From Perna viridis (taxonomy: Eukaryota), in NCBI GenBank assembly GCA_037379345.1, contig CM074512.1, positions 59,045,597 to 59,109,596 of the forward strand: a stretch of DNA of 64,000 nucleotides, given 5' to 3'. Of the stretch, positions 103 through 4,869 are shown one piece after another; the stretch's first letter is position 1; each line of letters begins with the position of its first letter. A program made the position numbers and the translations under genes. Below the pieces are notes generated by a model. It had not been told where the DNA came from. It worked only from the letters and a program-made list of their open reading frames with translations, and ran no database searches.

Positions 103-333
103 CTTAAGAAATTTAATTTCCCTCCTAGCTATCTTTTTTATCATACTATCATCCAAGTCAAAGCTTCGAAATTTTTTCACAGCCACCATTTCTCCCGATG
201 ATTTATTTCTACACTTATAAACGACACCATAAGAACCCTCGGCGATTATTCCAAGTTTTTCATATTTATCTACATGTTCTGGACTAGAATAATATCCATC
301 TTTGTTAAATCGTTTCGCATAATGCACATACAT
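103..333 (-). CDS. CDKL1: Divergent duplicate of CDKL first coding exon (copy B): [77 protein letters not shown]
   Basis: Open frame, same phase-0 donor position (AAG/gtcagt), pyrimidine tract plus AAG acceptor at 342-343; downstream exons fall outside the window. Confidence 0.8.
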
Positions 334-1918
334 ATTTTTCACTTGAAAATGGAAAAGATACAAACATGAAATACCATGATACCTTGTAAATACCAAACAG
401 AGAAAGCACCTATGGAATTAGTACCATGACGATACAGTGTACAAAATAGTTGTATTTTTAAGCATTAATCAACATGCAAAACTAATGCAACATTTATTAA
501 AAAAAATTATAAACTAGTGCACACCTGATACACATACATTGTATTATTATTAAGCAATTCATGAAAAAATAGGAAAGCCTACTAAAACAGTTAAAAATGC
601 TAAAATCAACCCTATTACAGTGCTCCAGCTATGGCAGCTAGCCTTTTCTGCTCTTCACATGAATTTGAAAAAAAGAAATATGTGTACATGAACATGTCAC
701 TGTCTTTTTTTCATGTACATTTAAATACATTACATGTATGTTGTACATTATACAAATGTAACATACATGTACAAAACTGCACATGGCAGTCTATATAGTT
801 TATTTTCAGCTATACATGTGAATGTACAAGTATTTTGTCAAGTCACAAATGAGTGCCAAAAAATGCACAAATTATGCCCTTAATTTTTTTTGTATATAAG
901 TACATGTATTGTAATGCATTCTATTTTCTAGTCTCGTTAAGTACACTGTTTATACATTGTACATGTACAAATGTAATTACTTCAGCATGATTGTGTTTGC
1001 ACTCCAGCTGATATAATATTTTAAACCTTGTTGTTTCTTATTAATTGTTTGTTAAAATTTCTTACTTCAATTTTTCAACTTATACATTTGTAGGTGTAAA
1101 AAAAAATAGAGATTCCCCAAGGAAAATGATATTATCCAATGAAACTTTAGTTACATGAATTAATACTTATGTGTATGGAATAAATTACAGACTTTTTCAA
1201 ACCTTAATTTTAGGTCAAACTTGGGCCACATTCCCAAAGAGAAATATGCTTCTAATTTCCCAGATTTGTACATGATTAAAATGGAGATTTGTGAGAAGTA
1301 CAAGATCTACTCTCCACTCTATTGTATCAAATCTGTCATCCAGAGTTCACTTCATTGACTTAAATACTATGGAAACAGTACTGATTCTCATGTGGATTTT
1401 AATTAGCAATTATTTATAAAACACTATAAAAATTCTTGCCTTCACAAAAGATTATTTCCCAAAACTGCAAATTTCACTAATTTTCCCAATGGGCCCAGTC
1501 CCCTTCCCAAATACAGAAGGAAAATTGCTTACATTTTAGTAAGACATTGATACCTGACATAGCAGCTTAGCCTACATAGTATGCAAACAGCTACTACATG
1601 TACATACAGCTCTATACCCTTATACTCAGTGAACATTGATTTTTGCCAATTTAAGAAACTGATATTAATTTAAGTAGACATGATTTTTCAAGGAACAAAA
1701 GGGGAAATTGAGAAAATCATAAATAAAAAAGATACAGTTGTAGTATTACTAATGTTACTGTAACAAAATAACTAATACTATTACCGGTAAATTACATGAA
1801 GTAAAATCTAGGCACATACAAATGTACATTTGTAATTACAATGTATATGCAACACTTTCCCTTTTATATTCTAACAGTCTAACTGTTTGATCAAGTTACC
1901 CTTCTTTCTTCAGAGAAG

Positions 1919-2434
1919 GCCCCATGCAGGTCCGGGTGTCAAAAGAATAGGCCTGCAGCAGCCCTAAGCCTGTCGTAAAAGGCGACTAAATAGTGCTCAG
2001 AACCTTAGCCGGGGGCTAGGGCACTCTGCCCACACAGAAACAGGGTTGTGTGCCCCAGGTGGTGGAATGGGGTACCCCTGGTATGTTACATGCTGGGGTT
2101 GTCGGGCTATAATACGGAAAACCTGACCGCAAACCATAGTGATGCACCGTGTTGGGAAAGATGCCACGTTTCTCGCACGTTAAAGAACCCTACTGTGGTA
2201 TTCTCCCGGAGTAGGAACCATAGGGCTCCGCCACAGGAGGCTAAATTGCCCGACCCTACCCACCTCTCCCTATTTCCAGTGGCAATCAAAATTTCTCAAC
2301 CCCGTTGTCCTTGTGTCCCATCCCATTTTTCATTTGATCATCATTTCATGTTCATATTATCATCCACTTCATGTTCATCGCCTGAATATAGCTGAAATAT
2401 TGCTGCTCGGGCGTTAAACCCAAACAAACAAACA
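1919..2434 (+). mobile_element. SINE-like non-autonomous retroelement, copy 1
   Basis: 12-bp TSD TCTTCAGAGAAG (1907-1918, 2435-2446); (CAAA)n tail; central GCACGTTAAAGAACCC...GAGTAGG...GGCTAAATT resembles the Deu/Nin SINE domain; second copy at 23.4-24.0 kb. Confidence 0.9.
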
Positions 2435-2549
2435 TCTTCAGAGAAGTACTTACTATTCCTGCTAAAAAATTATTTTAAATGTGTACATTTGTATATGCAC
2501 TGTGAAGAATGCAGAAACATCAAAAGTGTTGACAGTAGTGTACTTGTAC

Positions 2550-3671
2550 CAGGGCTCACGCTACTGGGCGTTTTGGGAAAAATAGTCACCCTGGAGTTGC
2601 TCATTTCGCCCTCAGACAACACCAAAAGCGAAGTGAATTCACCCTGTCATTTTCAGAATCGCCCATGATTGGGATTATACTCTGTCTAGATCTTTTAGCG
2701 TTATTTTGACCAGAGTTATCTCTCTTCCGATAACAATTCAAACAAAAATGGTGTCTGTTCGAGAAAATAAATTGTAAAAAAATTTTGAAATCTATTGAAT
2801 TAAAGGTCACAAGCAAGTATTTTAATCAGCTCTTTGTTTCAAACGGTTAAGACAGGATACGGAACAAACATTCTTCACTTCAGCTTATGATAATTCATGT
2901 TTAATTGTTTACATTTCGTTACCAAACGTGCAAATTTGTCGTGCGGGTTCAATTGATAATTCGGTAGGAAACCCGAAGAGTTTCTTTTAATCTTCATATT
3001 TCATAACAGAACAATAAATTCTCCATTTCGACAGAACATTTCCTAAGCTTGTACTGACCGCTACAATACACTGTATGTGTCAATAAAGTTTCAGTCTTGA
3101 TTTGTCAGTATTAAATTTTTAACATGATTATTGATACTCTTAATCAACTTATATCAAGAGACTGGATATTTTGAACATGAAATTATTATGGATCAAGTGG
3201 GATCAGAAAAAAAACAACAAAATGAAAATTCCAACAGAACGCTACTGCCAGAAATTTTCTACTCCAGTGCTGCTAAAAGACAAAATCAATAGAACAATGC
3301 TTTGGAAAAAGCTTTGCTTTGCTCAATCATTTATTACTTTTGCTGTCATAAATTTGGTAAGGGGTTGAGGTACAGATTAGAAATTCAATTTCATAAACAA
3401 ATGATATAGTCAATCATTCTGTCAGCAGGCTGATTTCAATTTGCCCAAAATGTTTAATTACTTGCATATGTAGCTTAAAGAAAAATCAACATTTATATAA
3501 AAAAAAAAAATGAATGTATGGAAATGCTTGCTTATATTGTGTGCATGTAAGTATTATAAAACACATAATTTCAAAAACCATTGGTAAATGATGCATTTAC
3601 ACATTCACTGCTCCCTAGTGTCTTTCTGAAAGAGTGGCTCTCCCTAATTTTCTCAAGTAGCTTGAGACCTG
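2550..3671. mobile_element. Non-autonomous hAT-like DNA transposon with 6-bp TSD
   Basis: TIR CAGGGCTCACGCTACT / AGTAGCTTGAGACCTG; flanked by TTGTAC direct repeat. Confidence 0.75.
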
Positions 3672-3716
3672 TTGTACACACGCAAGTTTCTCTTGCAATT
3701 TTTGTTTAGGTGAATG

Positions 3717-4347
3717 GGTATGGTCTACAATATGTAACCCGTACCCACACCAACTTTTCCCCATACCCAAATAATGTTTTGCTAAAATATTCATTCTTAC
3801 AGTATGTTAAGAACTGAAAATCACATGACATGTGGAAAAGTCAGCTTCAATACATTTTTAATCAAGAAAATGATGTATATTTTTTTCTAATATTTCTTGT
3901 TTGATCGGTTTTCTGAAGTCAAAAGGTCTAAAATGTGTAACTGGAAGTTACCATACCAAACTAATTATTGACTATTTCTCACTTTCCTATACAAATTTTG
4001 AAGTTTTATAAAATCATAGAGGTTAAAACTTCACTTTAAGACTTCGGGTAAAGTTTTGAAAGATTTGATATTATTTTAAAAAAGAAGTGGTTGAGTTTGA
4101 ATTCCGTAGTGTACCTAGCATCAATCCCCATGCCAGCAAAGAATGGATACGATCTTATCCAGAATGAAACGTCTCATAAACAGAGTCTGATGCGATTTTA
4201 ATTTTAAATATGATTAAATCTAGCCTAACCATCATATCATTTTGTAAATATGTACCAACTTTCAGATGGAAATATCATGTATTAATGAAGAAATTGACAA
4301 AATAGTATTTGGGTACAGGTATGGGGTTACACAATTTAGACCATACC
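3717..4347. mobile_element. MITE (possibly MULE-like)
   Basis: TIR GGTATGGTCTACAATATGTAACCC / GGGTTACACAATTTAGACCATACC; imperfect ~9-bp flanking repeat (..TGAATG). Confidence 0.7.
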
Positions 4348-4536
4348 AAATGAATGGTCTCTTCTTACGACATGATGCATTTTCCTACAATTCTCATTCT
4401 TACATACTGTGGGTTAACTAAATGCTTCGAGGGCATTTAAGTAAATGTACATCTCAGATTATTTTTTATTATCTTTTAATTAGTCCATAGTATACCAAAA
4501 ATGTATGTCCTTGCCAACATATTAAAATAAACAAAC

Positions 4537-4704
4537 CTTCAACATTCTTATTTCTCTCATTGCTATCTTCTTAATCAGATTGTCATCTTCTGATTCCAGG
4601 AACTTTTTAATAGCAACAAGTGCTCCTGTTTCTCTATTCCGACACTTGAACACAACACCATACGATCCTTCGCCAATCTTGCTAATTTTTTCATACTTCT
4701 CCAT
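4537..4704 (-). CDS. CDKL1: CDKL1-like kinase, first coding exon (copy A): [56 protein letters not shown]
   Basis: KKIALRE-family helix motif (KKIAMRE), GEGSYG loop, phase-0 donor gtttgt; likely acceptor upstream of 4804 and a short 5'-UTR intron 4805..4869. Confidence 0.93.
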
Positions 4705-4869
4705 ATTGTCATAGAGAACACTGTGTTTTATATGCAAATCACAGGCGTGTAAATGTGACTAGAAAAAAGGGACTGATCCAAAGGGACACTTTTTCAGCTC
4801 GCGGCTGAAATTTATAATCGCAGAGAGTATGTATTTAGTGTAAAATTAAATGCATACAAGTGTGTTTAC

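Follow-up and report, generated by a model that had tools for sequence, protein, structure and literature searches.

Tissue-specific isoforms of a kinase can arise through the choice of a first coding exon, as in the somatic and sperm forms of the PKA catalytic subunit. These PKA forms differ in a short N-terminal tail only, whereas the locus under study would exchange the Gly loop, the strand with the catalytic lysine and also alphaC. Cilium length is under the control of CDKL kinases, of which CDKL5 is a human disease gene, and to our knowledge little is known on how the N-lobe tunes CDKL activity or localisation. The CDKL5 disease change G20R corresponds to G11R in C. elegans CDKL-1, a change that leaves the kinase mislocalised and the control of cilium length impaired (cf. 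Canning et al. 2018, PMC5846859, for the CDKL family). No CDKL with two alternative N-lobe exons was found in the literature searched.

The variable-first-exon genes UGT1A and Drosophila hydra have been reviewed (PMC9013439). As in these genes, the present locus displays tandem homologous first exons, a canonical copy (exon A) and a diverged one (exon B), which encode differing N-terminal functional parts and would be joined one at a time onto common exons, the junction of B being a predicted one. In the UGT1A type every variable exon brings a start codon and is spliced onto the first of the common exons; exon A does both, and the ATG of B is conserved in four species. Unlike UGT1A and hydra, the locus has two copies only, its variable part makes up half of the catalytic core of a kinase, an acceptor-like site precedes the ATG of B and the promoter of B is putative. 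The other related systems are substitutions of tandem-duplicated exons and mutually exclusive exons (PMC8373072, PMC9741552, PMC5740500), with which the locus shares an ancient duplication, the same 3' splice phase, purifying selection on both copies and a joint inclusion that would break the frame. In those cases, however, the exons are internal and the isoforms are usually both well expressed, while here A is the terminal 5' exon and B is unseen in RNA.

The window, i.e. the whole stretch of 64,000 nucleotides that was analysed, carries the 5' part of a bivalve CDKL1-type kinase gene with a single set of C-lobe exons. According to a gene model taken from the spliced transcript of a relative, the gene lies on the minus strand from ~ window 5085 to ~ -16,850, negative positions being left of the window. 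The features of its two N-lobe exons are given in Table 1, where a slash marks the splice boundary.

Table 1. Features of exons A and B and their surroundings (window coordinates).
Feature	Position	Strand	Properties	Basis
Exon A, 5'UTR, unspliced	4705..5081	minus		relative's transcript and own-species contigs
Exon A, coding part	4537..4704	minus	56 aa, phase-0 end	translation
Exon A donor, AAG/gtttgt	4531..4536	minus		sequence
Intron A-to-B, ~4.2 kb	342..4536	minus	without kinase exon; flanks of A and B dissimilar	
Candidate acceptor of exon B, ttttccattttcaag/TGAAAAAT, upstream of ATG	334..356	minus		sequence
Exon B, coding part	103..333	minus	77 aa, phase-0 end; ATG at 333, last codon 105-103	translation
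Exon B donor, AAG/gtcagt	97..102	minus	AAG/GT kept in 4/4 B-type exons	sequence
Interspersed repeat, end	1..73		~328-nt repeat, window -254..73	

The translation of exon A comprises a start codon, the Gly loop IGEGSYG, the VAIK lysine and an alphaC with MREI. Its best solved relative is human CDKL1 (PDB 4agu, residues 2-57, E = 8e-27), followed by CDKL2 (4e-22) and CDK5 (3e-13), and in the printed alignment 50 of 56 residues are identical to human CDKL1 over the N-lobe part. Exon B, which lies in an open frame of 131 codons (417..25), begins with 21 extra N-terminal residues followed by the Gly loop IAEGSYG, the VAVK(K) lysine and an alphaC with RREI. In this AEGSYG loop the first Gly of GxGxxG is lost, and B has one extra residue compared with A (FRSFDLDD versus FLESEDD). 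Among solved structures CDKL2 (1.8e-17) and CDKL1 (3.3e-16) are its best relatives. Relative to the CDKL family B adds the extension, the inserted residue and KIARRE, and its replaced first loop glycine is at the position of CDKL5 G20, where B-type exons carry Ala or Ser and not Arg.

The two exons are identical at 34 of 56 residues (61%), and the tblastn E value of 8e-19 shows a likeness far beyond chance. They are thus homologous neighbouring exons, both ending in ...LK AAG/GT in phase 0. A search with exons 2-5 by tblastn found no CDKL exon between them, and the spliced transcript of the relative jumps from 4537 to -5280. On these points the initial annotation was accurate: it had described, with the correct range for exon A, two paralogous N-lobe exons ~4.2 kb apart with the same phase-0 donor and no CDKL exon between them, a canonical copy A, and a stop-free copy B that keeps the Lys and the alphaC Glu and has its own ATG with ~20 extra residues.

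The downstream exon set begins 5.4 kb beyond B, with exon 2 at G000:C2:59040192-59040314. These exons, left of the window, encode HRDVKPEN, DFG and GDEYTDYVATRWYRAPE, which holds the CDKL/MAPK-like TxY activation loop (TDY...ATRWYRAPE), and the spliced 369-aa protein of a close relative (P0254) carries Pfam PF00069. Whether there was one such set or two had been left to be checked; there is one. A genome search gave a single exon-2-like match and a single exon-5-like match on this chromosome, so that there is one C-lobe for A and B alike. Neither within 40 kb nor elsewhere on this chromosome was a second set of homologues of exons 2-5 present, and the other CDKL genes of the genome are on contigs 4 and 10. 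It is hardly credible, then, that B opens another kinase gene equipped with downstream exons of its own, even though its own ATG and extension would suit such a gene.

The junction of exon A with exon 2 is present in RNA runs X1 and X6, whose contigs pass from exon 2 into letters identical to the 3' end of A. The exon-2 RNA contigs have a loose end at L015 170, and a contig of X8 carries the same exon 2 piece. Upstream of the junction, the transcript of the relative (L021 1-505) is colinear with window 5054..4537, and own-species contigs reach 394-545 nt upstream of exon 2, lengths that fit an unspliced 5'UTR. Exon A therefore bears ~340-380 nt of colinear 5'UTR and is the 5'-terminal exon in the transcripts seen. 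Its start site probably lies near 5054-5085, beside a ccaacATGGCG motif, the exact position being deduced. Since the 5'UTR of A is colinear with the genome, the layout is that of an alternative first (coding) exon and not of an internal mutually exclusive pair.

B-type exons come from four separate sources: B itself, P0002/L016, P0005/L017 with L020, and P0151/L018/L019. The derived marks that they share are a Met-Tyr start, an extension of 15-21 residues, a first loop Gly replaced by Ala in three of them and by Ser in the fourth, the motif KKFR, an additional residue, and KIARRE. In the trees, where the exon of the third species was pieced from the two sister contigs L020 (5' part) and L017 (3' part), the four form one clade (support 100/98) on a long stem. 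The clade groups with CDKL1-like and not CDKL2-like exons, with a support of only 66/56 for that fork.

The closest orthologue of B (P0002/L016) is 86% identical in amino acids over all 77 residues. At the nucleotide level the two can be aligned only from 333 to 101, i.e. starting at the ATG and ending with the GT of the donor, where they are 79.4% identical and gap-free, while the flanks are at shuffled level (0.49-0.57 vs 0.53). The differences at the three codon positions number 10/6/32 (chi-square 24.5, 2 df), dN is 0.09 and dS is saturated (at least 1). Third positions dominate the differences in all pairwise comparisons of B-type exons as well as between A and B (12/12/31, dS saturated). 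The ATG of B is conserved in four species, conservation stops at the donor, and no frameshift is found in the four B-type lineages. B is a protein-coding exon kept by purifying selection and bounded by its ATG and donor, an old duplicate that at least four species have retained in coding form.

The RNA of the species gives a different picture. Depth on B is 0 in X8 and 0 in the raw run X7, against a mean of ~15 for the bin with exon 2. X1 and X6 together yield on B one colinear 157-nt contig with a depth of 5.6, which is the level of the intron background (2.2-5.4). No joint of B with exon 2 was seen in the four runs X1, X6, X7 and X8, and the 22 words sampled from B were absent from 17 further runs of the species, guessed by type to be RNA. 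Protein searches were in line with this: word-indexed searches with different length windows returned neither a spliced fragment of B type nor a full-length isoform with B, and no B-type protein was among the best 120 matches of a full-length search in which the 8000 candidates sharing most words were scored. For the A isoform of a close relative there are 31 member sequences. The proposal that one gene builds two kinases on a shared C-lobe thus holds as to the single gene and its C-lobe set but finds B in no spliced read or contig of the data covered, and of the two junctions expected that of A with exon 2 was found and that of B was not. The proposed lobe swap is therefore partly supported, well by evolution and as yet unproven in transcripts.

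Taken together, we consider that B is probably an alternative 5' coding exon which is spliced in phase 0 to exon 2 of the shared set and is active outside the sampled RNA settings. The choice of B would give CDKL1 a second form, with another ATP-binding lobe and the same C-lobe, and its use would fall in a cell type, stage or condition absent from the sampled RNA. The transcript of B would begin either at its own start site or through a donor in the 5'UTR of A that feeds the acceptor-like site 8 nt before its ATG. The joining of B to exon 2, the way in which its transcript begins and the function of the variant lobe are inferred.

The same lack of B reads and junctions in four runs, and of B words in 17 others, would also be observed if B had worked in the ancestors and still did in the relatives but had recently been switched off here, its frame being undecayed. 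A possible cause is the repeat inserted at window -254..73. It sits 29 nt downstream of the donor of B, belongs to a family of thousands of copies and displays a very high RNA depth. Furthermore, the selection tests average over long branches and are blind to such a recent loss. However, the frame, the ATG, the donor and every B-type mark are intact, and with copies of the repeat no more than 89-94% alike the insertion is not very young. Moreover, spliced B forms are absent for the relatives too, a sign that B is rarely expressed overall and not that it was lost here. We regard a silencing of B in this species as unlikely.

The letters 5' of the ATG of B read ttttccattttcaag/TGAAAAATATG, with a candidate acceptor 8 nt before the ATG and pyrimidines at 11 of the 12 positions preceding the AG; as a background, ~2% of intronic ATGs have a site of this kind within 20 nt. 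An acceptor-like site is found upstream of the B ATG in three of the four species. The upstream sequence of B is unalignable between species. The presence of the site argues for an upstream splice partner, which B may have, rather than for a promoter of its own. The first bases after the candidate acceptor are TGA (341-339), a stop in the phase-0 frame of A. The annotation had read this TGA as a block to joint inclusion. It stands in the window sequence, but the relatives do not keep it in the form of a TGA. What recurs is the frame, since the candidate AG-to-ATG distances in the four B-types (8, 13, 2 or 17, and 10 nt) are never a multiple of 3. The chance of this is ~20%, so it is weak evidence. 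An A+B transcript would hence be out of frame in all four species if the candidate acceptor is used; no A+B transcript was seen, all the transcripts seen containing A only.

This frame break would suit a classical internal mutually exclusive pair, as the annotation had it, in which a shared noncoding exon upstream or a donor in the 5'UTR of A (such as CTG/gtaaac, 4873) is spliced to an acceptor before A or B and A+B products are removed as nonsense. Strong acceptor-like sites do precede both the ATG of A (cccttttttctag/ at 4763) and that of B, and the relative also has a GT after CTG at the equivalent place of its 5'UTR. Yet the transcript of the relative keeps the region homologous to 5054..4705 unspliced, the lengths of the own-species contigs agree with it, and the transcripts seen begin with A, with no known upstream exon. 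Complementarity of the docking/selector type was not found in the introns either, as a comparison of the conserved block after B with the flanks of A and B gave only matches of 10-11 nt, a chance level. On this evidence we consider the internal arrangement improbable. When the B region and L016 were scanned against Rfam, only two miRNA-like matches came up, both below threshold.

It is very unlikely that B is a pseudo-exon, a tandem duplicate which is dead and out of use and whose frame is open as a relic only. No expression was seen, the first loop Gly is lost, and one contig of a relative (L017, third species) has a TGA at the Arg codon of KCRNK. But dN/dS against the orthologue, whose introns are no longer alignable, is ~0.04-0.09, the conservation runs from the ATG to the donor only, and the four lineages are without frameshift. 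Neutral models fail as well. Under neutrality of B since the duplication the 31 third-position differences are never reached, and in a neutral drift to 61% identity the open frame and six key residues survive in ~1% of runs. As a sign of decay the TGA of L017 was rejected, given that the sister sample L020 has CGA there and that both contigs are jumbled assemblies of ~100-nt pieces. L018 and L019 are identical in the exon and in the upstream flank too, and hence uninformative. The annotation's reading of copy B as a coding exon is supported by these comparisons.

On a broader scale, and tentatively, the single CDKL1 of bivalves may have a second ATP-binding lobe that predates the split of at least four sampled lineages and has been retained ever since, with the choice of first coding exon as the switch and a restricted context of use, for instance spermatogenesis or ciliated larval or sensory cells. 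In that case the variant lobe would alter nucleotide handling, partner binding or ciliary placement, a natural swap of lobes in a kinase of cilium length. If true, a selected alternative N-lobe on an unchanged C-lobe, which hits the disease glycine of CDKL5 and changes alphaC, would be a ready-made comparison. Meanwhile, a strongly conserved coding exon can stay invisible in ~20 public transcriptome runs, which bears on how far RNA-only annotation in molluscs can be trusted.

As to its composition, the variant lobe has Ala or Ser for Gly at the CDKL5 G20 position, a basic face of alphaC and an S-P site in its N-terminal tail.

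The two N-lobe first-coding-exon copies of the CDKL1-type kinase gene, A and B, were confirmed on re-reading the window, G000:C2:59045597-59109596, in which both lie on the minus strand, and the ranges, donors, motifs and TGA reported for them in the initial annotation are all correct. B carries 21 extra N-terminal residues and its remainder is identical to A at 34 of 56 positions, with one residue inserted. Both VAVKK, the strand with the catalytic lysine, and the glutamate of alphaC are retained in B, whose motifs read IAEGSYG in the loop and KKIARRE. Against solved structures, A matched human CDKL1 (8e-27) and B matched CDKL2 and CDKL1 (about 1e-17 to 1e-16). 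The closest relatives of B in the genome are A (59%) and an exon on contig 4 (57%), the remaining CDKL genes being located on contigs 4 and 10.

In the 40 kb left of the window, a combination of motif scanning, ORF listing and tblastn gave a single series of downstream exons, not two, and no second copy of exon 2 or exon 5 was found on the same chromosome in a search of the whole assembly.

Exons of the CDKL1-type gene and the adjacent repeat (negative positions lie left of the window; slash, splice site)
Feature	Window position	Strand	Description
Exon A, coding part	4704..4537	-	56 aa, donor AAG/gtttgt
Exon B, coding part	ATG at 333 to 103	-	77 aa, donor AAG/gtcagt
Interspersed repeat, ~328 nt	-254..73 (L015:5196-5523)		29 nt after B's donor
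Exon 2 (QLKHQNLVNL...)	-5282..-5404	-	motif/ORF/tblastn
Exon 3	-6217	-	motif/ORF/tblastn
HRD/DFG exon	-9389	-	motif/ORF/tblastn
TDY/APE exon	-12324	-	motif/ORF/tblastn
More exons	to about -16850	-	motif/ORF/tblastn

Between A and B, differences at the three codon positions number 12/12/31, with a dN of 0.26 and a saturated dS. Since no similarity is left between their flanks, the duplication is old. When an A-like exon was simulated as drifting neutrally to the same protein distance, only ~1% of runs kept an open frame together with the six key residues. Furthermore, with first and second positions matched, a model in which B had been neutral since the duplication never arrived at 31 differences in third positions.

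A full HMMER search with B returned P0002, a database protein 86% identical to B across all 77 residues including the extension. Its contig, L016, aligns with the own genome from ATG to donor GT only (window 333..101, 79.4%, no gaps), the flanks being at shuffled level. Here codon-position differences are 10/6/32, dominated by third positions, with a dN of 0.09 and a dS of 1 or more. Two additional B-type exons were found, P0005/P0197 (L017, L020) and P0151 (L018, L019). All four B-types share a Met-Tyr start and an extension of 15-21 residues, and VAVKKFR, the extra residue, KIARRE and an AAG/GT donor are present in 4/4; the first loop position is A, A, A or S, never glycine. The tree unites them in a single clade (100/98) with a long stem, among CDKL1-like exons and apart from the CDKL2-like clade. 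These data from other species are decisive: B is a coding exon that purifying selection has maintained since before the sampled lineages split.

L017 and L020 are JGI metagenome contigs, mosaics of ~100-nt pieces in both orientations, and gene calls on them need care, including a TGA read as W in P0005. One contig of the pair has TGA at the Arg of KCRNK; this was rejected as a sign of B decay, given CGA in the sister sample and the jumbling of both contigs.

A search profile headed by a full-length CDKL1, to which exons of this gene and B-types were added as separate rows, returned P0254, a close relative's A isoform (369 aa, 31 member sequences), and no B-type protein among its best 120 matches. 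L021, the P0254 transcript contig, is colinear with window 5054..4537 and then with each downstream exon, and the species' own contigs, which reach 394-545 nt upstream of exon 2, fit this layout. Hence, A is 5'-terminal and its 5'UTR of about 340-380 nt is unspliced; the pair is therefore an alternative first coding exon layout and not an internal mutually exclusive cassette. A B transcript would have to start at a site of its own, include a small leader exon or use a donor within A's 5'UTR.

In 3/4 species, B's ATG is preceded at 2-17 nt by an acceptor-like site (roughly p = 0.01 for the four combined), which favours a putative upstream partner. In own B, a pyrimidine tract and AG stand eight bases 5' of the ATG (ttttccattttcaag/TGAAAAATATG), with 11/12 pyrimidines (background about 2%). 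Joining A's phase-0 end to this AG would give TGA. A stop directly at the junction is peculiar to this genome; the candidate AG-to-ATG distance is a multiple of three in 0/4 species (~20% chance expectation), so that an A+B transcript would lose the frame in each of them.

Several upstream ATGs occur in A's 5'UTR (window 4705-5100), as do short upstream ORFs, e.g. ATGGCGACG... ending in TGA; this 5'UTR region is 78.7% identical to the relative's transcript, whose 5'UTR also has an upstream ORF. An AATAAA signal at about 5860-5885 (minus strand) is probably the end of an upstream same-strand gene, which would leave <800 nt for the CDKL1 promoter.

When the run index was queried with exon B alone, the exon was fully present in three runs with genome-sized contig sets, 55% of its words were in two runs of ~95 million letters (X1, guessed as RNA; X6, of unknown type) and none in 17 further runs of the species, guessed as RNA. 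L015, the own-genome piece spanning window -5450..500, served as the target for one run of raw RNA reads (X7) and for the contigs of X1, X6 and X8. Exon 2 (L015 46-170) was covered at a contig depth of 137 in X1, 138 in X6 and 102 in X8, and the X7 bin containing it had a mean depth of ~15. In X1 and X6, the exon 2 contigs run into exon 3 at one end and at the other read on into sequence that matches A's 3' end exactly, demonstrating the A-to-exon-2 junction. On exon B, depth was 0 in X7 and X8, and X1 and X6 gave a single colinear contig (157 nt, depth 5.6), on a par with scattered intron contigs (2.2-5.4). No joint between B and exon 2 was seen in the four runs on L015. Thus, no use of B can be detected in these samples.

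The initial interpretation, one gene building two kinases on a shared C-lobe, is hence partly supported: the downstream exons form one set and B is under selection, whereas the B isoform itself is unseen in the sampled RNA. The best reading, and in our judgement a reasonably likely one, is a single gene with two selectable N-lobes; its main rival is that B was recently silenced in this species.

UGT1A and Drosophila hydra offer precedents for homologous tandem first exons, each joined singly to common exons (PMC9013439), and substitutions of anciently duplicated exons form an established class (PMC8373072, PMC9741552); our literature search found no report of alternative N-lobe exons in any CDKL. 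Changes of the first loop glycine (CDKL5 G20R, C. elegans CDKL-1 G11R) mislocalise the kinase and impair cilium-length control (Canning et al., PMC5846859); exactly the same glycine is replaced in the B-types, but by a small residue. In P0003, a GSK3-like database protein, the Gly-loop/lysine segment occurs seven times in tandem, which is probably an artefact of another organism's assembly or gene model.

Within the intron after B, about 200 nt of single-copy non-coding sequence are conserved (window -1110..-1310; L016:1196-1434; G000:C2:59044320-59044487 and slightly beyond), 76-80% identical to the relative while the remaining intron is unalignable. This block includes a donor-like TGTTG/GTAA(A/T)G; it matched nothing in Rfam, its RNA depth was no higher than background, and its complementarity to the flanks of A or B did not exceed chance. 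Elsewhere on L015, positions 399-597 (window -5051..-4853) had a contig depth of 22-36 in X1, X6 and X8 and almost none in the raw RNA run, and a non-canonical joint 482->5196 (TT..AC) reaches the repeat edge; both are probably repeat-derived or chimeric, and 399-597 is not a CDKL exon. The repeat itself has thousands of copies (5520 first-look candidates), 89-94% alike, with a very high RNA contig depth, up to about 2e5, and heterogeneous ends at L015 5196.
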